Positions 1,313-58,525 of a DNA stretch of 64,000 nt are shown in pieces. Each line of letters opens with the position of its first letter. The stretch's first letter is position 1. The stretch is from Ruditapes philippinarum (taxonomy: Eukaryota), in assembly GCF_026571515.1 (NCBI RefSeq), contig NW_026866227.1, positions 62,001-126,000 on the forward strand. Direction: 5' to 3'. The notes under the pieces were generated by a model. That model ran no database searches and was not told the origin of the DNA. It saw only the letters and a list, made by a program, of their open reading frames with translations. The position numbers and the translations under genes are program-made.

Positions 1313-2099
1313 CAGTAAAACTTCTTCAGAGCAACTCCTGGAACTGGCAAAGATTTAGTTGTTATGGAGAGGAGTTGCCCTAGGAGGTAAATTCCGTGTT
1401 AAATATTAAAGGGACTCCACTGAGTGAAATCATAAAACTTAAAAACATAAAAATTAAATGTCTCACAAAGCTGAGTGGAGAATATCAAAACATAATGATA
1501 TGCAAAAAATAATTAAGAAATTTACTCAGAAATAAATTGAAAATCATATTTGTGGTATTATAAGTCTGAATTTATTGAAAAAACGCTTTTCAATTTTTGG
1601 TAATTTTTACAGTTATAATAATTTTTCTGGAAAAAAGGGAGAGTGTGAATGGGGAACCTGAAATTTTGAACACAAGCTATTGGTCTAGACACCTACTTCA
1701 AATGGAACATAAAAGTCGAAAATTTATTTTAAGTCTTCACTCTTGTTATGTCAAAAACCCTCAGTGGAGTCCCTGATTTCAACTGATTAGGAGTGTCATG
1801 TGACCGATTATCAGCTTGCGGCCCGGGGCTATAACTGATAATCATAATCGGCCCGCTGAAGACAAGTACATGCACATACTGAAACAATGATGTCACATTT
1901 CACGTCATCAAAACAGCAAGCTTTAATAGCGAAAGTAGGATTGAAGTACAAATTGCTTGATTTTATAGTTAAAACATAAGTGTAATTTCTACAAACACTG
2001 CTTTATTTAAATTTAAAGAAAAAAAAAATAGTTACAATTTCATTCCGTGAAAATAAATTGTGCTGCACATACAGGGAAGCAACTCTGTAGAAGTTACTG
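1313..2099. mobile_element. Probable Tc1/mariner-pogo-type MITE hosting a nested MITE
   Basis: TA|CAGTAAAACTTCTTCAGAG at the left end and CTCTGTAGAAGTTACTG|TA at the right end: imperfect TIRs with TA flanks. Confidence 0.4.
1410..1774. mobile_element. Non-autonomous TIR element (Kolobok-like MITE)
   Basis: Perfect TIR AGGGACTCCACTGAG...CTCAGTGGAGTCCCT, preceded by TTAA on the left. A related copy lies in the opposite orientation at 9299-9653. Confidence 0.65.
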
Positions 2100-2186
2100 T
2101 ATAGTACAGTTGAAATCTACAGAGATAGAAATTTCAACGAAAGAAATATCAATGTAAATTTTAGATCTATCAAGTGTATTAAAGAC

Positions 2187-2335
2187 ATTAATACACGCCA
2201 TAGATGGACCAGAAGGTGATAATCAGCCCTGAAATTAATAATGTCCTCCGGCTAAAGCCCTCAGGGCCATTATTCATTTTTGGGGCCAATTATTACCTTC
2301 CTGCCCTGCTCTGCCCTACTCTGCTGTGTATTAAT
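2187..2335. repeat. Short imperfect fold-back (MITE-like) downstream of ALT
   Basis: ATTAATACAC...GTGTATTAAT termini and an internal inverted pair GAAGGTGATAAT / ATTATTACCTTC. Confidence 0.4.
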
Positions 2336-2430
2336 CTCTTACTACATATGTACAAAGTTAACAGTATTCTAGTTTCAAGTAAGAAGTAAGCTGGAATCAA
2401 TAAAACAAACTAACCTTTAAGATAAGCACA

Positions 2431-5400
2431 CTATTGGTATTTCTTCAAGAAATTGAGATGAAACTCCTTGAATTTTTCCAGCACAGCTTGCATTTCTTCA
2501 AGTTTAGGAAGAATAGTGATCCTAAAGTGGTAGGTGCCTGGCTTCTCTCCAAATCCCGAACCTGGAACCGTACAAATCCCTGTTGTTTCAAGAAGGTCCA
2601 TACAGTAGAAGAAATCTGGAGACTGTTTTTGAGCCTCTGCAGCTTTTACAGCCTTAGGTGGTAAAAATATACGTGGAAATGCATACATTGCCCCCATCAC
2701 CTCATTGCATTTTATACCTTCAATTGAGTTGAATAACTGTGTGACTATTTCAGCTTTTCTCTTCAAAAGGGACAGAACTTCTGACTTCTCTTTTTCAAAA
2801 AGTTCATGAGACGGTTCCCCAGGTTGTGGCGGGTTTACAATAGTGTCCATAACAACTTGTCCCAAGATGGGAGGACAAAGCTTGGCCGAGATTGATTTAA
2901 GAAGAATCGCTTTCACGTCAGGAAGTAGATTTACGACCTCTGCATATCCCCCTCGGAACCCGCACTCCCCCATATAACCTTTAGAACATGACATAAAGGA
3001 GGCTAGCTCTGTCTTGCTGTATTTACCATTCTCCATCTCTGTCATAACCTTCTTGAAGGAGAAGAAAGCCGAGCCCTTCGCCCAGATGTTATGTTGATAA
3101 ACCTCATCCGCTAATATCATCAACTTGTGTTCATTGGCAAACCTAATTATGTCCTCTATATTCTTTCTAGTGAGAACCTGCCCTGTCGGATTTCCGGGAT
3201 TTATCACACATATAGCCCTCGGTACACATTTACCTTTGGCATCTTTAAAGGCTCTCTCTAACTCACTTACATCCAGACTCCACATGTTTTCTTCATTGAG
3301 ATAGTACGGGATTGGATGGGCATTGTATTCAGTGAGGGTTGCCGTATACAGTGGATACTGGGGTACTGGTATCATTATTCCGGCCTTCTCACATCCGTCC
3401 TTACCTGTCATCACGAGATTGAGGATTGTTTTTATACCATCACTAGCACCAGTGCACAGTATTATATCATCAGAACTAGCTTTCTGTCCATCTCTCTTTG
3501 TGATGTAGTTAGCAATATCTTGTCGAATAACTTCAACACCAGGTGAAGCACTGAAGTGTAAATATACCAACAAATTTAGCAAGGAAAAAAAATGTCCAAT
3601 GTTCCTTTGTTAGATTTTATATAGATATTTGTCATTAACTAAAACTATCACTGAATTACATGTATATAAAAACAAGAGCCATCACAAACAGGGGCCACAG
3701 TTTACTTTCTCTTAATAACAAAAGCTACAACATTGATGTCCGGGTCATTTTTGAGTAAAGGTCAAATACCTTACAATATGCCTATGTAGACTTTATTTTT
3801 ATTACATGTATTACATAAAAATTATGTAAAATTTCATTAAAAATTGGTTGAGTGGTTTTGTAGATGCACATACAGACGGCAAGCTTCAATCTTGGCTGGT
3901 TGTTGTGTGGGAATGTGGAAAGTATTATAATTGCGCTTATTGTAACAACAAGAGCTGTCAGTAGGACAGCACGCTTGACTATTCTTAGAGCTTGATAGTA
4001 AAAGAGCTTTGATAATGTAAAATTTTCTAAGTTCACAATAACCTAAAAGGCAATTTATTTTCAAATCCATGTTAGAGTTATAGGCCTTGGAAAGAGTCCT
4101 ACTATGCTCTCGAAGAAGTGTATAAAATTTCAACTTGTTTCAAAGTAAGATGTCAAAAAAATATGAAAATGCAAACTTTAACATAAATTCTAAGTCGAAA
4201 AAGGGGCTTGATTCTGTCAAAATTCCTTCTCCTGTCTACAGGTTGGAGTCATGGTGGTGAACAAGAGTGTGAACTTTCAAAGCCATATGTAAATGGACTT
4301 TGAGAATCTTTGAGGTGGTACGCACACTTAAATGTAAATTGTCAGTCGAAAAAAGGGGCTTAATTCTGTCAAAATGCTTGATAGAGTTACCTCCTCCTGT
4401 CTACAGGTTGGGTGCATGATGAAAAACAAGTATGCAACCTTTCAAAGCCCTATGTCAATAGACTTTTAGAATATTTGAGGTGTTACAAAAACTTAAACAT
4501 AATTGGTTACGCTGACGACTAGGATAGCTCTACTTATTCTTATTGAATAGTCGAGCTAAAAATGGCATAGCCTAAACAATGATAAATCAATTTTATTTGA
4601 CAATGTTATGAAATATATGGTAAAATCAGTGGACTAATAAACACTTAAGTATCTCACGCAAAGCACATTGAATTATAATAACCAATTCTTCATTACATTC
4701 TTTTCAAAACAATTTTTAATAAATTTCTGGCTGTAATAAAATTAAATATTTCTGTTTAAATAATCATTGTGAGAATTGAATCTGCAATCCTGAACCATCC
4801 GGGAGGGCAGATCGCTAATGCTGTAAGAACTTGGGCCCAACCATTTTGCTATTTGTTATAAAGAATTTGATTCTCTGTATATTTACATGTATATATTAGC
4901 AATAAAATAATGATTAGACTAACCATTTCTTGCAAGTTTGACCATTAATGTAAGTATATTGTATGATATAGTATGTGAAACATCATCATATACAACATAA
5001 ATACACACCTATATGAGCCAACACTCTTCCCTTTACATCCCTGTAGTATTCTGCGTGCTTTATTTTTTACATCATCGGGAAAGTTACACGAGTCCATCAT
5101 ATCTGGACATACACATGCTGCGACAACTTGACGTATAAATGTGATCGGGTTTTGACCAGTAGCATGACAGTCACCAATATTGGCTTGTAGCTGAAATAGT
5201 AAGAGATCTTCAATCTTTATACTGACATGGGGAATAAATTCTTACTACTTATTGCTTGTAGACTTTCATCTGTATAAATGTATATCTAATAAGAATGAAA
5301 TTAAGTAATCAAAAGCAGCATAAACTTTTCCTAAAAAGATTCTTGAAATAATATGATGTAGAAAAAAGACTTATCTTTTTATACAGTTAAAGATTTAAGG

Positions 5401-16619: not shown

Positions 16620-16806
16620 TAAATTATTCTAAATTTTACCAGTTCATGTTTAATGTTGAATTCTGCTTAAGCCGGTGCTAGGGGGCGTGGACGGTAACTT
16701 GCATTTTCCAGTACCGTCCATGAACAGGCTCAATCAAACCGAGCCTGCAACATTTTCAATTTTGCCGTGTTGGGCTTTCTTTAGGGATTCTGTATTTATC
16801 TATTTT
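16620..16806 (+). mobile_element. Structured non-coding repeat, family A copy (putative RNA sense on + strand here)
   Basis: Near-exact reverse complement of 20982-21165; ends at the family's fixed terminus TATTTATCTATTTT. Confidence 0.85.
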
Positions 16807-19423: not shown

Positions 19424-19605
19424 TTACGGAGCCCCTAAGGTAACATTTTCCACACTTTTTTCCCGAGATTTAATTCGTTTTTTACGAAATATTAATCCGT
19501 TTTTACGAAATGATAATTCGTTTTTACGAAATATTAATTTTTTTAACGAAATATCAATACGTTATTACGAAATATTTTTATAATATTTCGTAATAACGAA
19601 ATCCA
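19424..19605. repeat. Small element with 21-bp tandem units (TTTTTACGAAATATTAATCCG-like) that invert near 19580
   Basis: Starts TTACGGAGCCCCTAAGG; about 5 direct units, then the inverted ATATTTCGTAATAACG. Confidence 0.6.
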
Positions 19606-20437: not shown

Positions 20438-20928
20438 TGTCACAGAATTATGTTTATGTGCTACAGGGTGAGAAAAAAAATGTGTAGCTTCACCGGACAT
20501 GAACCCGGGATCCCTGTTATACCATTTCACGGCTCTACCGACTGAGCTATACAGCCGCTTACATATCCTATCCCAAAATAGTGAACCGTTTTCTGTGTGT
20601 GTATTGAGTTTATTTATACTCGCCACCTATTGCCTATATGGGCGAGTCCTCATGAAGAGTATAAGTCATTTTAGGCAAGTGTTTAAGCACTCATACACGG
20701 GACACGATATCGAGTCTCATCAGTTATATAAGTTGGCCAGCCCGGTTATCGAACCCACAATGTCGAGATTACAAGTCTCGCGCTCTTACCGATTGTGCTT
20801 TGCGGGCAATTTTGAACTTTGACAATGTTTTATAGTCAGCCCGACTAGACTAGAAGATCAACAGATACATCATCAGGTTTGAGACCAAGAGGCCGCTGGT
20901 TCGAGCGAGGCAAATTTACTCCGTGACA
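20438..20928. mobile_element. TG...CA-bounded repeat containing tRNA-derived segments
   Basis: Termini TGTCACAGAAT / ACTCCGTGACA. Two tRNA-like segments on the - strand (~20558-20483 and 20807-20734) and a B-box GGTTCGAGC on + near 20898. Confidence 0.45.
20734..20807 (-). pseudogene. tRNA-Thr(UGU)-like pseudogene or SINE head
   Basis: Anticodon arm CGAGA-CTTGTAA-TCTCG is perfect and A/B-box-like motifs are present, but the acceptor and T stems pair poorly. Confidence 0.5.
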
Positions 20929-20981: not shown

Positions 20982-21845
20982 AAAATAGATAAATACAGAA
21001 TCCCTAAAGAAAGCCCAACACGGCAAAATTGAAAATGTTGCAGGCTCGGTTTGATTGAGCCTGTTCATGGACGGTACTGGAAAGTGCAAGTTACCGTCCA
21101 CGCCCCCTAGCACCGGCTTAAGCAGAATTCAACATTTAAACATGAAATAGTAAAATTTTGAATTTAGAAACATCCGCAGATGTGTTCATACGGCGGTTAT
21201 CATTGAACCTTCAATGTGACACAGTAGTGCCATTCCATGAAAAGCGGCGTATGGTCCCCAAGTAATAAAAAGCGTGTGCCCTAAACGAGAAAACAATGGG
21301 CGGAACTAAATAAAATGGAATTTTGAAAGGGGATCAGAGGTTATGAAGCCTGCGTATCACAGATTAGACGTCAAAAGACAAATTTAAAAAGCAGGCAACA
21401 TATCCTAAGGGTGATTCAACATTATTCAAGTAGGAATATTGGAACCACCCAACTAGAAAATGCCGAAAAGTTGAAACTAAAAATACCACAAGCACAACAA
21501 TAATGTCGTGCTGAACGATCTTCAAGGATCGAAAATATAACATCATTGATTAAATGTACGGGGAGACTTTTTACAGCCGCCACACGGCACAAATAACACG
21601 GATGTGATCATAAAATAGATAAATACAGAATCCCTAAAGAAAGCCCAACACGGCAAAATTGAAAATGTTGCAGGCTCGGTTTGATTGAGCCTGTTCATGG
21701 ACGGTACTGGAAAGTGCAAGTTACCGTCCACGCCCCCTAGCACCGGCTTAAGCAGAATTCAACATTTAAACATGAAATAGTAAAATTTTGAATTTAGAAA
21801 CATCCGCAGATGTGTTCATACGGCGGTTATCATTGAACCTTCAAT
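20982..21845 (-). mobile_element. Structured non-coding element, family A: 630-nt unit with 234-bp terminal redundancy (retrozyme-like candidate)
   Basis: 20982-21215 and 21612-21845 look identical (period 630). No ORF, no TG...CA ends, no clear TSD. Several conserved stems (see findings). Confidence 0.85.
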
Positions 21846-22003: not shown

Positions 22004-22260
22004 AGTCAGTGAGCTCAATAGGTAGAGCGTCGGACTGTGAATCGGGCGACCCTGGTTCGATTCCTGTACGGTGTAGATCACTTTCTTTGTAATTTATCAT
22101 GAAGATTTGCACTATACCTTTGCTCTGGCATGTAGAGAAGTTATCAGTTCCTTGCGAAAGTGAAGGCAATCAGTACTGGTGAACTGCTTGACAGCCTGTT
22201 CAGGAACGATGCGGTGGCTGGTAAATTCAATGTTGCTTACTGCCGTGATCAGAAGTGAAA
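22004..22260 (+). mobile_element. tRNA-derived SINE (Meta-domain-like body)
   Basis: Head GAGCTCAATAGGTAGAGCGTCGGACTGTGAATC...GGTTCGATTCC with A/B boxes. Body AGTTATCAGTTCCTTGCG...AGTACTGGT...AGCCTGTTCAGGAAC. A related 3' fragment lies at ~21850-21990. Confidence 0.65.
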
Positions 22261-29471: not shown

Positions 29472-31055
29472 CTACTCAACTGTTACTAAGCACCATATGT
29501 TTGAGTGTGATTTTTTTTTGGATTTGTACGAAAGTTATTAAATGTTGATTTACTGTTTTATCAATTTAGCTGAAGACCAAAGTAACCATATAAATGAGTT
29601 TTACGCTGCTTTTGTGCTGGAGAAGAGGATGACCCCTGCGCCCCCCTCTTTGAATATTTCAGAACATGCAGCGTGTTTTTCAAATTTGTTAAATTGGATT
29701 TTTTGTTTACAGTTTTAGACTAAATACCGTGTGTGTGACCCTTGACTATCAATGAGAGCTTGGCAGCGCCTTTTCAAAACTCCCTCTTATAGGTTTTTGA
29801 TCGTTCTAACGGATATGGCTCACCATTGTTGGACCAACATGGGTCAAGCTCCTGGATGGTTCTGGGTTGCAGCTGACGAGCTGAAATTCTAATCTGCAGC
29901 TCATTACACGTGTGTTCTATTGTATTTAAGTCAGGTGAGCAAGTTGGCGAGTTCATGCGCTCAATAGACTCCTCTAGGCAGTCCAGGACCACCCTGGCCG
30001 AATGGGGCGAGCATTATCGGCCATTAGAATGAATTGATCGCCGACTACTCAAGCATACAACCTATTTGGTTGTCTAAGATGTCGGACCTGTCAATGTGCC
30101 TCTATTAAGAACAACCAGCTCGATTCGTCCATCCCAGCTGATGCCTCCCCACACCATAACTGGCCAACATCTGTAGCGGTCATGCTAAGCAATATTTGCA
30201 GCCTGAAACCGTTCACCTCGTCTTCTCCAGACTCTAGAACGTTTAATCGTGAAGTCTCGGCAGAACGTGGGCTCATCAGTGAACAGAACGTGACTCCAAT
30301 GTTGCATGGTCAACCATGTATGCTCCATGATCCATTCCAAACGGGCCTAACGATGACGACACGTCAAGGGGAAAAGTTTGCAGGTCTTCCCGACCGCAAA
30401 TTACCTTCATGCAGCCTTCTACATTCCGTATGCGTGGAAACACGGACCGCCACAGCATTAGTAAGGTCATTTCGAAGAGCAGTTGCTGTCGAAAACCTTG
30501 TACGACGAGTCTGAATGACCAAAAACTGATCCTGAGCTTGTGTTAGCATTCGCCATATTGAAATGACAGATGTAAGAAATGTAAGCCACTGAATTAAAAT
30601 AAGCCGGTAATGTCGCCGTATAACAAAAGACATGAAATTGTATACCCCATCATAAACATGAAAATATTGGGGTGCATGCTTTCCATGCTACCTGGACGAA
30701 TTGTAAAGGATTAGTCAACGCGAATTCATGTCAAAATAGAAAAAAAAGAATCCCTAAAAAATTCCAACACGGAAGAATTGATAATGTTGCAGGCTCGGTT
30801 TGATTGAGCCTGTTCATGGACGGTACTGGTAAGTGCAAGTTACCGTCCACGCCCTCTAGCACCGGCTTAAGCAGAATTAAACATTTAAACGCGAAAATGG
30901 TGAAATTTTCAATTTAAAAACACCCGCAGATGTGTTCATACGGCGGTTATCATGGCACGTTGCTAAATCAGAATTATCGAAAATTGGGAAGAAATCTGTT
31001 TTATACTTGTGATAATATAAAAATTAACTTATGGTGCTTAGCTTAAGTTAAGTAG
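29472..31055 (-). mobile_element. Decayed Tc1 (DD34E-type) transposon, copy 1
   Basis: TIRs TA|CTACTCAACTGTTACTAAGCACCAT and ATGGTGCTTAGCTTAAGTTAAGTAG|TA. Frameshifted transposase fragments QDQFL..RRTRFSTATAL..RRLHE, VRWGGIS-like region, DNARP and SPDLNTIEH. Confidence 0.88.
30733..30953 (-). mobile_element. Structured repeat family A copy inserted in Tc1 copy 1
   Basis: Homologous to 20982-21203, starting at the same AAAATAGA end; TCATG occurs at both junctions. Confidence 0.85.
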
Positions 31056-32010
31056 TATATCTCTTTATACAAAACATAAAACTACGTATAATATCTCATT
31101 GATTTGTACAGCTCATTCACTATAGAAAACTTGAAACTACATTTCACTAATTGTGATATTCAAAGTTGAAAATGCCCGGTTATTCCCCAATATTATATTT
31201 CACCCAATCGAAAGATTTTCTATTATGTGTTATGATTTTATAACCTTAAGATATTATAAAGCTACTTAAATATTCATAATTGTCCATAATTGATTTATAA
31301 TAGATTTTTTGTATTATTATCAGGTATTTGTATTTAAAAATCTCTTAACATAGTGTTTAGTCTCTTCATTATAGGAATAGAGGGCGCCCTCTATCGGGTA
31401 AATATTTTTTTCCATTGTCTTTTTATATTTAGAACGTCGTAGTAAATTAAAGGGATTTTGATATAGTCTAATGAAGGTGTAAATAAATTACTTTTGCTCA
31501 ATTTGTGTTTTTTTATATTTTAATTTTGTGCAAAATAAAAATCGTTTAAACGCTGTAATCACAGATCGGTCTAACAGTGGCGCTAAACATCATTTTTTTC
31601 AATTTAATCCTAAAAATTCTACTTCTTTTTTGTCTTTTTCATATATTTTTCCGTTTTAAGTGCTCTAGTTTAATCGATATATTTTTTTTTAATTTTATCT
31701 TTTAGGGCTTTTGGACTTCAACGGAGCTCCTTTAAGTTTTTGCAATTTGAAGGCGAAGTTTTAGATATAGCTTTAAAAACCTATAGACTACACATTCAAA
31801 TTACACAAAATTACATGACACATGAAATGGTAGGGCGTGTCTGGTAACTTGATACATTACTGTATCTGCTTTGTACGCTGTCTACACTGTCTTTTCAGAA
31901 TATAGAGCTACTGGAATACTACTGTAAACTTTATTTGAAGGATTGAATTATCATGTCTTGCCGCCTGAATTAAGCAGTGTTGTTTATAATCGTATTTTGA
32001 TAGATTGAAC

Positions 32011-35000
32011 ATGTCTTGCCGTCTGAATTTAACAGTGTTGCTCATAATCGTACTTTGTGGAGATGCATGTTGCAGCACATGTTTCTTTGGAGTTTGTTCA
32101 TGGGCGGAATGGAAAACAGTTTCAACTAATTGCGGATCGTCATACTGCAGTCAACAAAGAGCGAGACAAATATGTTGTTTAGATATTGGATGGACTCATG
32201 AGACGTGTAGTCGGTATTGTCCGGGATCACCAGATAGTTCTCAGTCAGGGACCGGAGATTCCAGTACATTGACATGTAATCACTGCAGTAATGGCGGGTC
32301 TCTTCAATATTACGGACGGGCATGTGACTGTGTGCCAGGATACTACGGAACTTGTTGCCAATATGGTACGTTATTTAACGTGTTAATATACATGACACTT
32401 CAATCTCTGGTTCTATCTAGAACTACGGGGTGACCGCTGGTATAAAGCAAGCTTCTAAATCTTTCTATTCACTATACATAGCATTTAGTGCGGTATTAAG
32501 AATGTATTTTTTAGAAACAAAGTTGTTTATGGGAGTCTGATACGGCTGGTATTTGTTGAAAGGTAAGAAACTTCATATTAGTGAAGTCACAAACGCAATG
32601 GTTATTGATATTTTTTGTGATACTTATTATTTTAAACAACAAGAATATGTGTTTAAAATTACTTTTGTCCGATAGGATTGTAGTATTTCAATTGAATCTG
32701 AACACATTGACTCTGGTAAATCTGTCCTGTTTTACAATAATTTCAAACACTAATTTGACATGTAATTGATTTTTATTTTTTAATGAACACTTACTTATTT
32801 AAATAAAGTCTGAAATTGGTATAAAAGAAATGCCTTGGTCCATCAATGTTCAGCTTATGTTGATTCAGCTCTATCTTAATTAATATAGATTTAACATTGT
32901 ATTTAGTTATTTGCATTAAATCTGAAAGTTGCTAGCTTGTTTTAAATTCTATCTAAGAGGGTTTAATGTTGATTTCTTTATCATCTTTTACAATATATCA
33001 GGTTTTATATTTATATCAGGATTTAATATATTTATAGTCCAATCTTTATGTTATAAAAAAAACCCTGTTGTCACAATACAATATGAAACTTCAATAAAAG
33101 GTAACCAATGAGCGAACATCTGAATATGATATTTCTATCGCGCTATCCCTTTCTCTGTCGCCACAATAAGTAAACCCTACAAAAACACTTTTCAACACAT
33201 TTTCAACATAAAGTTTCCCAAACAATAATACAATACCTTTAATGGATAATGCATTCTTTGTTTAATATGTCAGTCATTTATTACAATAGAGATATACGAG
33301 TGCAGCAGTTCACCGTGTAAGAATGGAGGCACATGTATAGATAAAGTCAATGGATTCTTGTGCGAGTGTCCACCTAGACTCTATGGAACATATTGTGAAA
33401 CTGGTACGTGGTGACGAGTTTTAGAATCAGTTGGTAATATAAAAAATAGTTTAATTTAAGACTACATACAAACCATTTTGAAGATACTTGTATGTATGTT
33501 CTATTTTCAAAAAGTATACTTCCTGTTTTTATACATTTATATTCAAACCGATTTATGGTCATTTAAAAAAAAACTTTTAAAAATCACACATGGTTAAAGT
33601 AGTCACTTGTTAAACATTTCTTCCCCAAAGTGATCATACCTTTTGAAATTTAGATTCCAGTATTTTCAACATAATTAATTCATTTGTATATCATATTGTT
33701 CTTGTAACGTCAGTTTTTTCCACAATAAACAATATAATTACTTTTTTAAATACCTAAAGTAAATGTACAACATAAACTTTTTTAACTTAATCTTAATTAG
33801 TCTGATTCGTGATCACTTTAAAGCAATAGATAGTACAGGACTGCAAATCCATATAAGTTTATGCATATATTTTCAGATATATGCCAACCTTCTGTAGCTG
33901 ATATAGTGTTTGTCCTCGACTCTTCTATAAGTCAGACTGAGGATCAGTTTAAACAACAGCTACAATTCGTTGAAAAGTTTATAGATCATATTATTATTGG
34001 AGAGAATAATCTACAGGTAGGTCTGGTAACTTATTCCACTGAGGCTCATATAGACATTAAACTGAATCAGTACCAAGATAATGCCGAGTTAAAAGAAGCC
34101 GTAAGAAAGGTACAATACAAACCAGGTGCAACTTTCACTGACAAAGGATTGCGAGCTGCATTGGAGGTGTTTTGGATGGTGTCTCATATCAGGCCGTATG
34201 ACAAGGTGGCTAAACGTTTCGTTTTTCTGCTGACGGATGGCTTATCGACGAACAAAGCAGAGACAGAGAAAGCCGCTGTAGCTGTCAAGGCAGCGGTTGA
34301 TAGAGTATTGGCCATTGGTATGTGTATATATATATATAATCAAAAACTCAACATACACAATGGCAATTGTCTAAAATACCAAAATATATACCGTCCTCAA
34401 CTTATCTAATTTACGAAAAGCATGTGACCAATACATTGATAAGATACGTTGCAACGACCTAAATATAATAAACTAAAAGACAGTTTTTCCTCTGTCATGA
34501 AAAGTGTAAAGAAAGTATAGTCTACCATTACTACATTGGTTACATAATAGTGAAAGCAATTTCGCTTCATACGATGGTAAAACATTTCATATTTATTTTT
34601 AAAACATGACATATTTATTTTTAAAACATGACATTTCTATTGTTTAACACTAAAGGTATAGGCCAAGAAGTCAGTCACAGTGAATTACTGAAAATCGCTT
34701 CCACTGACAACACGAACAATGCAGGGAAATTCGTCCACTCTGTTCAAAATTTCAACGCACTATACACAATAGTACAACAGCTCGTGCAGCTCACGTGCGA
34801 CGGTATTTACAGTTATATCTCATTAGTTTGTTGTACTTTATAAATCAAGCCTATCCTTAAACATTTGTTGTGAAAGCACAATAACCAACAAAACAAGACG
34901 TTTCTTTTAATAAGGTTGTAAATTTTTCCTAAGAAATATCAGAACATAATGAAAAAAAAACAACATTTTTTTATCTTGTTTTAAATTGATGACAATCACA

Positions 35001-43280: not shown

Positions 43281-43593
43281 AAAACAATCTGGAAACAAAG
43301 TGATCACTCGGAAGCATTAATCACAACAAAATTACAAGAGAATTGCAGACCCGGTTTGATTGAATCTGTACATGAGGGATAATGAAAATGTGCAACATCC
43401 CTCACGCCCCCTAGCATCGGCTTGAGCGGTACTCAACTCTCAACACTTAATAGTGCTGGCATCAATGATCCCGAAGGACCAGAAAAATATAACAACACTG
43501 AAGTGAAGTACGGGGCAACTTTTTACAGCTGCCCCACAGCACTTGACACCTGCTGTTGTGAAGTATAAAAATCTGAAAACAAAGTGATCCCTC
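43281..43593 (-). mobile_element. Structured non-coding element, diverged family B: 284-nt unit with ~25-bp terminal redundancy
   Basis: AATCTGGAAACAAAGTGATCACTC repeats 284 nt later. Shares CGGTTTGATTGA, CACGCCCCCTAGCA.CGGCTT.AGC and GTACGGGG..ACTTTTTACAGC with family A. Confidence 0.75.
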
Positions 43594-51655: not shown

Positions 51656-53187
51656 CTACTCAACTGTTACTAAGCACCATATGTTTGAGTGTGAATTTTT
51701 TTTTTTGGATTTGTTCGAAAGGTTTTAAATGTCGATTTACTGTTTTATCAATTTAGCTGAATGACGAAGGTAACCCTATTAATGATTTTATTATTGATTT
51801 TGTGCTAGAGATGAGGATGAACCCGCCCCCTTTTTGAAGATTTCAGAACATATAGCGTGCTTTTCAAATTTGTTAAATTGGATGTTTTGTTTACAGTTTT
51901 AGACTAAATACCGTGTGTGTGAATCGTGTCTATCAGATGAATAAGCAGGCGAGTTCATGCGCTAAATAGAATCCTCTAGGATTGATCGCCAACTACTCCA
52001 GCATGCAACCTATTTGGTTGTCTTAGATGTCTGACCTGTCAATGTGCCTCTATTTAGAACAACAAGGTTGATTTGTCCATCTCAGCTGATGCCTCCCCAC
52101 ACCATAACTGAACAACATCTGTAGCGGTCATGCTCAGGAATATTTGCAGCCTGAAACTGTTCACCTCGTCTTCTCCAGACTCTAGCACGCTTATCCGTGA
52201 AGTCTAGGCAGAATGTAGACTCATCAGTGAACAGAAGGTGTCTCCACTGTTGCATGGTCCACTGTGTATGCTCCATAATCCATTCCAAACGGGCCTAACG
52301 ATGTCGACGCGTAAAGGGGATAGGTATGCAGGTCTTCACGACCGCAAATTACCTTCATGCAACCTTCTACATACCGTATGCGTGGAAACACGGACCGCCG
52401 CAGCATTGGTAAGGTCATTCCGAAAAAAAGTTGCTGTCTAAAACCTTCTACGACAAGTCTGAACGACCAAAACTGATCCTGAGCTTGTATTGTGACCCTT
52501 TGTTGACCTGCAACATGTTTCCTGGCTGGTGTATCATACAGCCGATATCTCTCTCAGGCTCTGGTGATAACGATGTGGTACACATCAAGCGCCGCACCAA
52601 CATGGCGGAAGTTGCCCCCCTGCTGCACCATCCCTACAGTCCTCTATAACTTCTCTTAAATGCTGCCTAATATTAGCATTCGTCATATTGAAGTGACAGA
52701 TGTAAGAAATGTAAGCCACTGAATGACAATAAAAGCCGGTAATGTCGCCGTATAACAAAAGACATGTGATTGTATACCCCATCATAAACATGAAAATATT
52801 GGGGTGCATGCTTTCCATGCTACCTGGACGAGTTGTTACGGATTAGTCAACGCGGATTCATGTCAAAATAGAGAAAGACAGAATCCCTAAAGAAATTCCA
52901 ACACGGAAGAATTTATTATGTTGTAGGCCCGGTTTGATCGAGCCTGTTCATGGACGGTATTGGTAAGTGCAAGTTATCGTCAACGCCCACTAGCACCGGC
53001 TTAACCTGAATTTAACATTTAAACGCGAAAAAGGTGAAATTTTGAATTAAGAAACATCTGCAGATGTGTTCATATGGCGGTTATCATGGCACATTGCAGA
53101 ATCAGAATTTTCGAAAATTGGAAAGAAATCTGTTTTATACTTGATAATATAAAAATTAACTTATGGTGCTTAGCTTAAGTTAAGTAG
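51656..53187 (-). mobile_element. Decayed Tc1 transposon, copy 2
   Basis: Same TIRs and position as copy 1. Fragment WRHLLFTDESTFCL..RVWRRRGE..VMVWGGIS (52082-52288). Different internal deletions. Confidence 0.88.
52865..53088 (-). mobile_element. Structured repeat family A copy inserted in Tc1 copy 2
   Basis: Orthologous to 30733-30953, so the insertion predates the segmental duplication. Confidence 0.85.
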
Positions 53188-53568
53188 TATATCTCTTTAT
53201 ACAAAACATAAAACTACGTATAATATCTCATTGATTTGTACAGCTCATTCTCTATACAAAACATGAAACAACAATTCATTTATTGTGATATTCACGTGTT
53301 GAAAATGCCCGGTTATTCCCCAATGTTATATTTCACCCAATCGAAAGATTTTTCTAAATTACACAAAATTACATGACACGTGAAATGGTAGGGCGTGTCT
53401 GGTAACTTGATACATTACTGTATCTGCTTTGTACGATGTCTACACTGTCCTTTCAGAATATAGAGCTACTGGAATACTACTGTAAAATTTATTTGAAGGA
53501 TTGAATTATCATGTCTTTCCGCCTGAATTAAACAGTGTTGCTTATAATCATATTTTGATAGATTGAAC

Positions 53569-54397
53569 ATGTCTTGCCGTCTGAATGTTATGGTGTTGGT
53601 CATAATCGTACTTTATGGAGATGCATGTTGCAGCACATGTTTCTTTGGAATTTGTTCATGGACGGAATGGAAAACAGTGTCAACTAATTGCGGACCTTCA
53701 TACTGTTGTCAACAAAGAGCGAGACAAATATGTTGTTTAGATATTGGATGGAGTCATGAGACGTGTAGTCGGTATTGTCCGGGATCACCAGATGGTTCTC
53801 AGTCAGGGACTGGAGATTCCAGTAAATTGACATGTAATCACTGCAGTAATGGCGAGTCTCTTCAATATTACGGACGGGCATGTGACTGCCTGCCAGGATA
53901 CTACGGAACATGTTGCCAATATGGTACGTTATTTAACATTTGTTAACATACATGATACTTTGATCTCTGGTTCTATCCAGAACTACGGGCTGGCCACTGG
54001 TGTAAAGCAAGCTTCTTATTCTAATAACTATCAATAGTATTTAGTGCGGTATTGAGAATGTATATTTTAGAAAAAATGTTGTTTATGGGAGACTGGTACG
54101 GCTGGTATTTGTTGAAAGGTAGGAACCTTCATATTAGTGAAGTCACAAAACGCAATGGTTGTTGATGTTTTTGGTGATATTTTATTCTTTTAAAGAACAA
54201 GAATTAGTGTTTAAAATTACCTTTGTCCGATAGGATTGTAGGATTTCAATTGCATCTGAACCCATTCACTTTGGTAAATCTGTCCTCTTTTACAATAATT
54301 TCAAACACTAAATTTGCCATGTAATTTGATGTTAATTTATTTTAATAAACACTTACTTATCCTAAGTAAAGTCTGAAATTGGTATTAAAGAAATGCA

Positions 54398-54429
<32 letters not shown>

Positions 54430-57400
54430 TAATTAATAAAAATTCAACATTGTATTTAGTTATCTGCATTAAATTTGAAAGTTGCTAGATTGTTATAGAT
54501 TATATCTAAGAGGGTTAAATGTTGATTTTTTAATCATCCCTTACAATAAATCAGGGTTTAATCTATTTTCATATTCATATCAGGATTTAATCTATTTATA
54601 GTCCAATCTTATGTTACAAAAATAAAAACCCTGTTGTCACAATACAATATGAAACTTCAATAAGAAGTAACCAATGAGCGAACATCTGAATATGATATTT
54701 CTATCGCGCTATCCCTTTCTCTGTTGTCACAATAAGTAAACCCTACCATGCTCTGCTATGAAGTGTGGGTAACTAATACCTGTAATCCAGTTAACGCACT
54801 GTGCATGTATATTTCTGACACATTTTCAACAGAAAGGTCCAAAACTAGGATACAATTATGCAACAGAAAGACCATCGAAACACAAGGCTATCTGATTTGT
54901 ACGAGGGAGGTAGTCCCCGAGTATAAATCAGTTTTCCGAGTGTTTAGACGTTCTTTCTCCATTGATGCCAATGTGTTCCCTGTTGTCACAATATGAAACT
55001 CCAGAAAAAAGTAACCAATGTACGGGCATCTGAATATAACATTTCTATTGTTATCCCTTTCTTTATCGTTACATTAAGTAAACTAATATCAATGAGCATG
55101 CTCTTAAATGCAGCACTCAAGGTTACGCACTTTGTGTATATGTATACGATTTAACTTTGACACATTTTCAACAGAAAGGTCCCCAAACAATGATACAATA
55201 TCTTTTATTGATAATGTATTCTTTGTTTGATATGTCAGTCATTTATTGCAATAGAGACATACGAGTGCAGCAGCTCACTGTGTCTGAATGGAGGCACATG
55301 TATAGATAAAGTCAATGGATTCTTGTGCGAGTGTCCACCTAGACACTATGGAACATATTGTGAAACTGGTAAGTGGTGACGAGTTTTAGAATCAGTTGGT
55401 TATATAAAAAATGTTTAATTTCAGACTACATACAAGCCATTATGAAGATACTTGTATGTATGATCTATTTTCAAAAAGTATACTTCCTCTGTTTTTATAT
55501 ATTTAAATTCCATCCGATTTATGTTCATTTAAAAAAACACTTAAAAAATCACACATGGATAATGTAATCACTAGTAAAACTTTTCTTCCCCAAAGTAATT
55601 ATTCCTTTTGAAATTTAGATTCCAGTTTTTTTTCAACATTATCATCTACAAATTAATTATTTTGTACATCAAATTAATTAATTTGTCTATTATTGTTCCT
55701 GTAAAGTCAGTTTTTTCCACAATAGACAATATTATTACTTTTTTTCAATACCTAAAGTAAATGAACAACCTAAACTTGTTTAACGAGAACTTAATCTTAA
55801 TTAGTCTGGCCATTCGTGGTCACTTTAAAACAAAAGATAGTATATGAATGCAAATCAATACAAGCATATTTTTTCAGATATATGTCAAACTTTTCTAAAG
55901 TACTGTTATAGTTTTTTTTTTGATCCTCGATCATATTAAATACAGGTCGACTGAGGATCAATGTTTAAAAAATGAGCTACTAATTTTGGGGTTTTTTTTT
56001 GAGGAAATTATTATATAGGTTTTCCATAAATTACTTATTGGAAAATAATTACAGGGTAGGTTGGTATCTATTAAAATACATACAGACATTACAACTGAAT
56101 CAGTACTTTAAGTATTTTTTGGCCCGAGTTAAAGAAGCCGTAAGAAAGGTACAATACAAACCTTCAAACTTCAGTTAGCTGAGAGGATGCTAATTGCATT
56201 GGAGGTGTTGGGTGCGTGGTCTCATATCTGGCCCTTTGAAAAAGTAGGCTAAACGGTTTTCCCTTTTCTAATGCAGACGGATTGCTTATTTCCGGACGAA
56301 TAAAAGCAAAGACAAGAAAGCCGCTTTTAAGCTGGAAAGGCAAACCCTTTTGATTGGCGAGGTTGTTTGGCCATGTAGGTCTCGTATTTATTTTGACAAA
56401 GAACATCTTAGAATTCTATTCAAAATATTTACAATATGTCCTTAGAAGATTTCCCTAAATAATATTAAAAAGCTTGTCTTAAATTTTCTGTAATTGAAAG
56501 TAAAGCCATGATTCGACCCCAAAAAGTAAAGAAATGAATTTTGCACTTGACCTAAGTAATAAACATAGATGTACGTTTTTCCCATCATAAAAACGGTAAA
56601 AGATCCAAGTATAGCCAACAGCCAAAATTGAAAAATGTGAGGGCGGTTTAATTGAGCCGTTCATGGACGGTACTGTAATGAAACTTCTAAAACCACTTGC
56701 ACTGCTCAAGCAGATTTAAATTCACGAACTGGTACTTTTGAATTTTATCTCTGCAAGAAATTTATTCCGTGCAAAGCTTACGGAAATGTGAATATCTACT
56801 TCATTGCCAGCCTTCGTGAGCTGTTTAGAATAATGAGGATGTGGTGCACTGAAGGTTTACTGTTAACTAGTAAAGGGAAAAACAGTCCGGAATTGTTTTA
56901 TACTGTTGCTTCATGTTGACTCAAAACTCAATATCTAACACAACACTATATATACTTGAATAGGAAGAGCTAATTATTGCTTATACGAAGAAAACATTCC
57001 CTAAAATTTATTTCATAAAATACATGATCATATTTCGGATTTTAAAATCATGGACATGTCTATTGCTTAACTTGGCACGTTGAAAGGTAGAATAGTTGCC
57101 AAGAAGGTTAGTTTACATGTGATTTACCCGAAAATGTTAACTGACAAACGAACAATGCAGCGAAATTTTGTCCAACCATGTTCAAAATATTCAACGCACT
57201 GTACACAATAGTACAACAGCTCGTGCAGCTCACGTGTGACGGTATGTATTAGTTATATCATTAATTTGTTTTTAGTTTATAAAGCTACCCTATACTTAAA
57301 CATTTGTTGTGAAAGCACAAGAACCAACAATACAAGACGTTTCTTTTAATAAGGTTGTAAATTTGTCCTATGAAATATCAGAACATAATTTTAAAAAGTA

Positions 57401-58170: not shown

Positions 58171-58329
58171 AAAATGACTATGTATGTATATAGGTATTTT
58201 TTCTGTAAGCTTTGAATGTCAAGCTTTCGCTGTATTCGACTGTGCTCTTTTTCAAAAAGTAAAAGAAATGAATTTTGCAGTTGACACTGAGAATAAATCA
58301 TAGATGTACGTTATTGTAGATCCCATCTA

Positions 58330-58525
58330 AAATACGGTAAATAAGAATCCCTAAATAAAGCCCAACATGGCAAAATTGAAAATGTTGCAGGCTCGGTTTA
58401 ATTGAGCCTGTTCATGGACGGTACTGTCAAGTGAAAACTACCGTCTATACCCCTAGCACCGGCTCAAGCAGAATTTAACATTCAACATGAACTGGTACAA
58501 TTTTGAATTTTATACCTCTGCAAAG
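58330..58525 (-). mobile_element. Structured repeat family A copy at the right boundary of segment copy 2
   Basis: AAAATACGGTAAATAAGAATCCCTAAA..GCAGGCTCGGTTTAATTGAGCCTG..GGACGGTA..TACCGTCT. Its CATGAACTGGTA continuation is shared with the 16620 copy. Confidence 0.85.

Follow-up and report, generated by a model that had tools for sequence, protein, structure and literature searches.

A probable Penelope-type, concatemer-forming non-autonomous retroelement with a large conserved RNA fold and no hammerhead in Ruditapes philippinarum

What kind of mobile element leaves behind one full copy and a fraction of another, head to tail, of a unit that encodes nothing and lacks the terminal features of an LTR retrotransposon? 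This question is raised by an 864-nt insertion at positions 20982-21845 of the window, by which we mean the whole 64,000-nt stretch of the Ruditapes philippinarum assembly that was analysed. A first-pass annotation made from the letters of the window had described a partial tandem of a 630-nt unit with neither an ORF nor LTR-type ends, had likened its more-than-unit length to the footprint of Penelope-like elements (PLEs) and retrozymes, and had proposed a non-autonomous element spread through a structured RNA. We address the question here with the ends and junctions of related copies, comparative RNA folding, ribozyme searches and a search for a mobilizing partner.

Layout of the insertion and copies in the window

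The stretch 20982-21215 recurs at 21612-21845 with 100% identity over 234 nt at a spacing of 630 nt (a direct repeat whose starts can also be given as 20978 and 21608), and the 864-nt block amounts to 1.37 units of what we call the 'long' family. Read in the RNA sense, which we place on the minus strand (see below), unit mapping resolves the insertion into a complete unit at 20982-21611, whose RNA 3' end, ...UAUCUAUUUU at 20982, coincides with the fixed end given by the family-wide start positions, and, upstream of it, a 5'-truncated partial unit at 21612-21845, which retains the last 234 nt and resembles a pseudo-LTR. The two meet at GATCAT|AAAATAG, the invariant junction of the long family. 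The complete unit is 99.0% identical to the long-family consensus, which indicates that the insertion is young. The partial tandem, the missing ORF and the missing LTR-type ends were all as the first-pass annotation had them: the largest ORF overlapping 20982-21845 has 66 aa, leaving the block no coding capacity, and TG..CA ends, PBS, PPT and a target-site duplication (TSD) are all absent from the 630-nt element. No empty-site paralogue of its flanks was found among the sequences retrieved in this analysis.

Seven copies or fragments of the element make up 3.2% of the bases in the window. Besides the insertion itself, comparison with the family consensus sequences identified a copy of the 'mini' family described below, 1.1 units long and 93% identical to the mini consensus, at 43281-43593 (minus strand); a 5'-truncated long copy at 16626-16806 (plus strand; unit positions 1-182, 97%), which the core model R1 also recovered; and older 5'-truncated copies at 30733-30961 (minus strand; unit positions 1-230, 90%) and 58329-58510 (minus strand; unit positions 1-184, 88%). 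The copy at 52865-53095 (minus strand, 87%) duplicates the one at 30733 as part of a segmental duplication, and unit mapping and R1 added a decayed fragment at 56615-56678 (minus strand; unit positions 34-101). The segmental duplication itself is about 4 kb long (30033-33967 and 51981-55985, 80-92% identity), with one old element copy in each half.

Two other kinds of repeat lie in the neighbourhood of the insertion. Sequences resembling tRNAs occur at 20752-20807 (minus strand), 22004-22075 (plus strand) and 20485-20556 (minus strand), scoring at or just below the Rfam tRNA threshold; as ARAGORN calls none of them, they are probably the tRNA-derived heads of SINEs. A short tandem array with a 21-nt period and five copies (80% matches) is located at 19470-19576.

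End pattern across the family

In the 1.4-Gb assembly, a search with the 630-nt unit gave at least 799 candidate places at 94-100% identity, and we mapped this unit onto 30 retrieved loci. At least 1237 candidate places carry the 283-nt mini family, which has the fixed start AAAATTCTGGAAAC, behaves in the same way as the long family and corresponds to the long unit minus about RNA-sense nt 120-455, making it an internal-deletion derivative. Using R1, a covariance model of the 110-nt core, a rough first look at the genome returned ~522,000 candidates, the best 150 of which all reached the maximum score, and from this count we roughly estimate a core copy number on the order of 10^5.

Across ~140 long and mini insertions, the plus-strand end AAAATAGA... 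is fixed and the opposite end can lie at any unit position, following 0 to at least 5 whole units, so that the more-than-unit length noted in the first-pass annotation turns out to be a rule of the family. The plus strand starts at unit positions 1-3 (AAAATAGATAAATAC in the long family) in 51 of 70 insertions of the long family and 38 of 49 of the mini family, with two to four terminal A/T retained at the fixed end among copies. The overlap that gives the appearance of a terminal repeat measures anything between 26 and 587 nt, depending on the insertion. Independent arrays all show the same sequence where one unit meets the next (GATCAT|AAAATAG in the long family, GAAGTAC|AAAATTC in the mini family), with 0 untemplated bases.

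These properties bear directly on the simplest alternative, in which the insertion would be a TRIM-like LTR retrotransposon of miniature size, its LTRs 234 bp long, or would have arisen by local tandem duplication. Taken alone, the copy at 20982-21845 does resemble an LTR-internal-LTR arrangement; however, an overlap that differs in every copy excludes LTRs, arrays reach at least five units, the same junction occurs in independent loci, and TG..CA ends, PBS, PPT and TSD are lacking, which leaves this alternative with next to no probability. A DIRS-like element, which predicts whole units only, was rejected on the same family-wide end pattern, as were Helitrons, Pol III SINEs, LTR/TRIM elements and local duplication as candidate classes.

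The variable ends are not scattered evenly. Ten of the 70 long-family insertions end 26-39 nt into the next unit, against ~1.3 expected, at a position that coincides with the closing stem of the RNA fold described below (helix 7), and a second pile-up at unit positions 60-76 coincides with helix 6, a 7-bp hairpin. Long-family insertions show no excess of ends exactly at the unit end, and mini-family end points show only a roughly two-fold excess near the unit boundary. End points that lie past the boundary, read as stops on a folded template, imply a template longer than one unit, which could be a multimeric transcript or a circle. End-to-end jumping between unit-length linear RNAs is disfavoured, given that there are no extra bases at the junctions and no long-family excess at the unit end.

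Within arrays, units are identical in the young examples (the copy at 20982-21845, L010, L011, L014 and L034) and differ mostly by private changes in older ones. One array (L005:870-2160) departs from this, in that 15 of the 25 differences between its two units are variants common to other arrays; it therefore joins two subfamilies, either through template switching between different RNAs or because a later insertion landed precisely at the end of an earlier one.

Two nested insertions for which the pre-insertion sequence is known (L037 and L020) have a 0-bp TSD and no deletion. The flank upstream of the plus-strand start reads T-A-T at positions -3 to -1 in 41, 51 and 46 of 89 copies, respectively, against a 32% background, and the flank at the opposite end has a weaker alternating A/T signal. 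In several oppositely oriented pairs of elements (L020:1011-1325, L022:115-850, L051:318-1193 and L037:845-1277), the fixed (RNA 3') ends face one another across 0-14 bp, which suggests repeated insertion beside the T-rich end of an existing element; head-to-head pairs (L037:1-491) are rarer.

A strand-specific conserved RNA fold

Judging from the DNA, we take the minus strand to be the RNA sense of the element and assign its transcription and RNA ends accordingly; read this way, members of the family would share one fixed 3' end and differ in their 5' ends, as target-primed reverse transcription would leave them. For the mini unit, the folding z-score is -3.9 on the minus strand, compared with -0.75 on the plus strand. 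We then applied RNAalifold to 21 long copies aligned with 15 mini copies, the alignment being permuted to span the unit junction, and obtained a predicted fold of 69 pairs, 21 of them compensatory (both sides changed) and none lost in either family consensus. In this fold, 98.2% of cells are paired, compared with 37-45% in a control with partners slid by 1-3 columns. The mirror structure on the plus strand pairs only 83%, because ~13% of cells are G-U.

Four parts make up the minus-strand fold: a hairpin domain at the 5' side, a closing stem of 18 pairs, a core built as a four-way junction and a single-stranded 3' tail of 17 nt. The 5' hairpin domain (21540-21605; helices 9 and 10) includes the conserved GUAAAAAGU loop region, shows covariation and is kept in the mini family. 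The closing stem, helix 7, brings together a 5' strand at 21519-21530 and a 3' strand at 20999-21010 (RNA nt 82-93 paired with 602-613); six of its 18 pairs are compensatory, and a third set of changes is found in the metagenome lineage described below. In the 110-nt core at 21030-21139, supported by covariation and by an R1 score of 134.9 bits, a closing helix is joined by three hairpins: a small one, one of 11 bp with a stem that has been rewritten between families, and one of 7 bp that carries the invariant loop AAUCAAACC. Candidate pseudoknots include a pairing of the CGGU loop with ACCG in the helix-6 loop. The partial unit contains the core a second time, at 21660-21769 and again with 134.9 bits. 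The tail at 20982-20998, unpaired in the predicted fold, is the proposed start point of reverse transcription. All of these features are on the minus strand. Three stems that the first-pass annotation had drawn belong to the covarying core: 21033-21040/21130-21137 is its helix 2, 21041-21047/21057-21063 its helix 6 and 21068-21076/21092-21100 its helix 4.

An exact 21-mer of the core was found in five metagenome contigs, which represent a third lineage, 74-80% identical to long and mini. This lineage has the same fold with new compensatory changes, including further versions of both the closing stem and the stem of the long hairpin, and its copies share a common 3' end with differing 5' truncation points. 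Its retention of the fold indicates that the element is not confined to the R. philippinarum assembly and that the structure is under selection. The conserved segment that the first-pass annotation had placed after the junction, CGCCCCCTAGCACCGGCTTAAGC, is nearly invariant in the three lineages, ~25 consecutive unpaired bases are invariant across them, and the element RNA contains the invariant stretch AAGCCGGUGCUAGGGGG; conservation of the RNA is lowest around the unit boundary. One metagenome arrangement (L079:1210-1280, the same as L082) has a full unit followed on its 3' side by an internally deleted unit fragment that ends inside the long hairpin, and this runs against the fixed-3'-end rule unless another insertion interrupts it.

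The strand on which the fold exists helps to evaluate a DNA-level mechanism, namely rolling-circle transposition from circular DNA (Helitron/HUH, one-ended), with the plus-strand 5' end at the nick and random termination. A fixed end combined with a variable one, copies longer than the unit and the lack of a TSD are all as one-ended transposition would have them. Nonetheless, the element has no 5' TC and no 3' CTRR and is not inserted between A and T (a flanking T precedes its AAAA start), the covarying fold uses G-U pairs on the minus strand, opposite to the strand that would be transferred, and stops at RNA helices suit a polymerase moving from the fixed end on a folded minus-strand template. 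We thus regard this mechanism as very improbable.

A further alternative is a SINE-like element moved by a non-PLE LINE (e.g., stringent-type RTE, CR1 or L2) that reads the 3' structure, its concatemers arising by read-through of arrays. The fixed 3' end, the 5' truncation and the conserved stem-loop region at the 3' end are hallmarks of LINE-dependent SINEs as well. Against this, a tRNA, 5S or 7SL head is absent, Rfam scans having found no match to these small RNAs inside the unit, and internal T4 runs in the RNA-sense unit speak against Pol III transcription. Moreover, head-to-tail insertions of several units, a short extra tail, the lack of a TSD and a TA-rich target are traits of PLEs rather than LINEs (PMC8557442), and we consider a LINE-driven SINE distinctly improbable.

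Search for a ribozyme

The first-pass annotation had found no intact CUGANGA..GAAA core, and in our pattern test the hammerhead core CUGANGA is absent from both strands of long, mini and metagenome copies. Of ten canonical PLE loci in the same genome, seven were positive in this test with a GAAA required after CUGANGA, each having a well-formed hammerhead downstream of the ORF. These seven loci (L061:1230-1310 on the minus strand, L068 of the same family, L062, L065, L066, L067 and L070) contain plain minimal cores, for example CUGAAGA-AGAC..GUC-GAAA, ~35-75 nt from the 3' end. Rfam models for hammerhead, twister, twister-sister, pistol, hatchet, HDV-like, hairpin and VS ribozymes gave no match at E <= 10 on either strand, in segments of 321, 576 and 3001 nt around long and mini junctions as well as in the metagenome relatives. 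At this threshold Rfam also misses the plain hammerhead of L061, which served as a control; negative scans of this kind therefore carry little weight, as odd or permuted variants could be missed, and we prefer the pattern test with its positive control.

One segment of the long unit, at 21519-21545 on the minus strand (RNA nt 87-110), resembles the first half of a hammerhead (UUGAAGA-UCG..CGA), with one mismatch in CUGANGA and a 3-bp helix II. Since no GAAA accompanies it and the mini family has not kept it, it may be a vestige or a chance match. An HDV-like fold starting from the unit boundary was also tried and rejected; the first helix lies 3-8 nt downstream of the boundary, at an offset that differs between long and mini.

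The principal rival to a protein-driven account is a strict retrozyme, whose minus-strand multimer would self-cleave by an uncharacterised or permuted twister-like ribozyme, in the core or at the boundary, to give ligated circles and, by rolling-circle reverse transcription, concatemers. By eye, AAGCCGG..UGCUAGGGGGCG in the core resembles the 3' half of a twister. Mapping twister P1, P3 and P5 onto the core by hand aligned AAGC and the G-run and left the helix topology unmatched, and the assignment was rejected; in the core, the strand that would follow the cleavage site is folded into a hairpin of its own, which does not suit the twister fold. A Twister-P5 genome search returned nothing among the 80 of 14,721 candidates that were scored. 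More generally, a retrozyme would explain the template of more than unit length with invariant junctions, the identical units of young arrays and the long invariant unpaired runs inside the four-way junction, the Rfam models are insensitive to odd variants, and the 283-nt unit and non-coding tandem layout match those of animal retrozymes (PMC7229834). On the other side stand the Rfam negatives reported above; in addition, conservation of the RNA is lowest near the unit boundary, where one would look for a cleavage site, and inside the core insertion ends cluster only at helix starts. Hammerhead-less PLE clades make the same concatemers, so that concatemers need no ribozyme (PMC8557442). Taken together, these observations make a strict retrozyme unlikely. 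A variant of this model, in which the core would be a new or strongly permuted self-cleaving ribozyme that replaces the hammerhead in a clam lineage of Penelope-dependent elements, and in which monomeric circular RNA and rolling-circle reverse transcription would have spread the element to ~10^5 copies, seems to us distinctly unlikely.

Search for a mobilizing partner

A Pfam search detected at least 531 GIY-YIG PLE candidates in the genome. All twelve GIY-YIG loci that we retrieved are canonical elements with a C-terminal EN or their decayed fragments; in L062, L063, L064, L065 and L070, a further open frame of 174-250 aa directly follows the GIY-YIG domain. A SECIS search led to a selenocysteine Naiad (Sec-Naiad), whose L074 locus has PLE RT motifs and a TGA within the CxC motif and whose related copies L075 and L076 bear a SECIS. 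The L074 copy (reverse strand; oriented 1479-3593 and 4397-5296) has in-frame TGA codons and a 3' part homologous to L075/L076, and a long-family element is nested in its RT region. In L075 (reverse strand; oriented 3938-5274), the SECIS-bearing Naiad 3' part of ~890 nt forms a partial tandem, and four copies start within ~80 nt of one position, as if a short SECIS-carrying Naiad derivative were also circulating.

Neither the unit (by blastn) nor R1 had a match in the ten canonical PLE loci (L061-L070) or in five Sec-Naiad 3' parts, with the sole exception of a 14-mer, GATTCTGTATTTAT, common to the unit and the 3' UTR of L061/L068. The RNA end of the Sec-Naiad, ...UUAUCUUAUUUU, weakly resembles that of the long family, ...UUUAUCUAUUUU, over the terminal 12 nt; over the last 40 nt, 20 of 500 shuffles score as well.

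Proposed mechanism and implications

The reading that we prefer, with a probability of roughly two in three, is that the insertion at 20982-21845 is a young copy of a very abundant non-coding, non-autonomous retroelement that is copied from a structured RNA by Penelope-style target-primed reverse transcription. The spread through a structured RNA proposed in the first-pass annotation is upheld to the extent that the fold is strand-specific and covarying and that the ends follow a family-wide pattern. We infer that the minus-strand RNA would fold into the 5' hairpin domain, the long closing stem, the four-way-junction core and the tail described above, and that a reverse transcriptase acting in trans would prime at the fixed RNA 3' terminus on a nicked AT-rich target (TAT|). 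Copying would then proceed toward the RNA 5' end and cross unit boundaries seamlessly, because the template would be longer than one unit; this template would be a multimeric transcript or, less likely, a circle. Copying would stop at variable points, often at stable helices, and would leave [partial unit][unit]n, constant at the 3' end and ragged at the 5' end, in a target site that is not duplicated. Most likely, the conserved fold would be the handle that the reverse transcriptase recognises. The mobilizer is most likely a GIY-YIG PLE, perhaps one of the hammerhead-less Naiad clade.

Three observations weigh against this Penelope-type reading. First, neither the ten canonical PLE loci nor the five Sec-Naiad 3' parts searched match the unit or R1, and the Sec-Naiad terminus resembles that of the long family only weakly. 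Second, a circular template would account equally well for junctions that never vary and for young arrays whose units are identical. Lastly, the ~25 invariant unpaired bases exceed what a simple protein handle needs.

The element family appears to fill a few percent of this bivalve genome and would thus be a major force in shaping it. If it is mobilized by PLEs, then Penelope-style concatemer insertion works at a large scale without a hammerhead, which bears on the role of the ribozyme in PLEs and retrozymes and on the origin of pseudo-LTRs. If instead the core is a ribozyme, it would define a hammerhead-free class of animal retrozymes. In either case, the covarying fold, with its invariant loops in at least three lineages, is a concrete RNA candidate for an RT recognition signal or a catalytic motif, and model R1 can serve as a marker for annotating such elements in other molluscs.

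Comparison with known systems

Among known elements, stringent LINE-dependent SINEs are likewise non-autonomous and 5'-truncated; their 3' end is fixed, and the structured region at that end is probably bound by the RT. They differ in that SINEs are single units with TSDs and a Pol III head, whereas the element described here forms concatemers with neither a TSD nor a small-RNA head.

Animal retrozymes are tandem non-coding units with a presumed dependence on PLEs, and a type I hammerhead and circRNA define the class (PMC7229834; 10.64898/2026.07.22.740005). The element shares with them tandem units of a few hundred bases, low GC, a highly paired RNA and dispersed monomers, dimers and multimers; relative to a layout of ~150-450 bp non-coding units arranged head to tail, the mini unit has 283 nt, the long unit 630 nt, and arrays reach at least five units. 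The retrozymes, however, have a type I hammerhead in every unit and abundant circRNA, and the element has no hammerhead on either strand.

The Penelope/Poseidon/Neptune PLEs of the same genome (L061-L070) share the pseudo-LTR style of insertion but encode an RT with a C-terminal GIY-YIG, whereas the element is non-coding, and the 3' ends are unlike except for the 14-mer in L061/L068. To our knowledge, no large covarying RNA fold has been described for the non-autonomous elements of the Naiad and Chlamys clades, and the element matches none of the Sec-Naiad 3' parts searched beyond the weak terminal resemblance. In other respects these clades provide the closest parallels. PLE insertions are partial tandems (pseudo-LTRs) with severe 5' truncation and often carry a tail of 30-40 bp; the N-terminal-EN clades Naiad and Chlamys lack canonical hammerheads; Naiads prefer (TA)n targets and are dominant in bivalve genomes; and non-autonomous Chlamys elements, such as MRC1 of Chlamydomonas, form multicopy head-to-tail insertions (PMC8557442). 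Like the derivatives of these clades, the element is non-coding, occurs as 5'-truncated partial tandems and multicopy arrays with a fixed 3' end and a short tail, inserts at TA-rich targets (the T-A-T flank) and has no hammerhead, and by analogy its end points 26-39 nt into the next unit recall the PLE tail. A high copy number in bivalves is also common to both, although that of the element is far above the tens of thousands of Naiads (PMC8557442). The element is therefore best filed as a hammerhead-less, concatemer-forming, Penelope-type non-autonomous retroelement with a large conserved fold.
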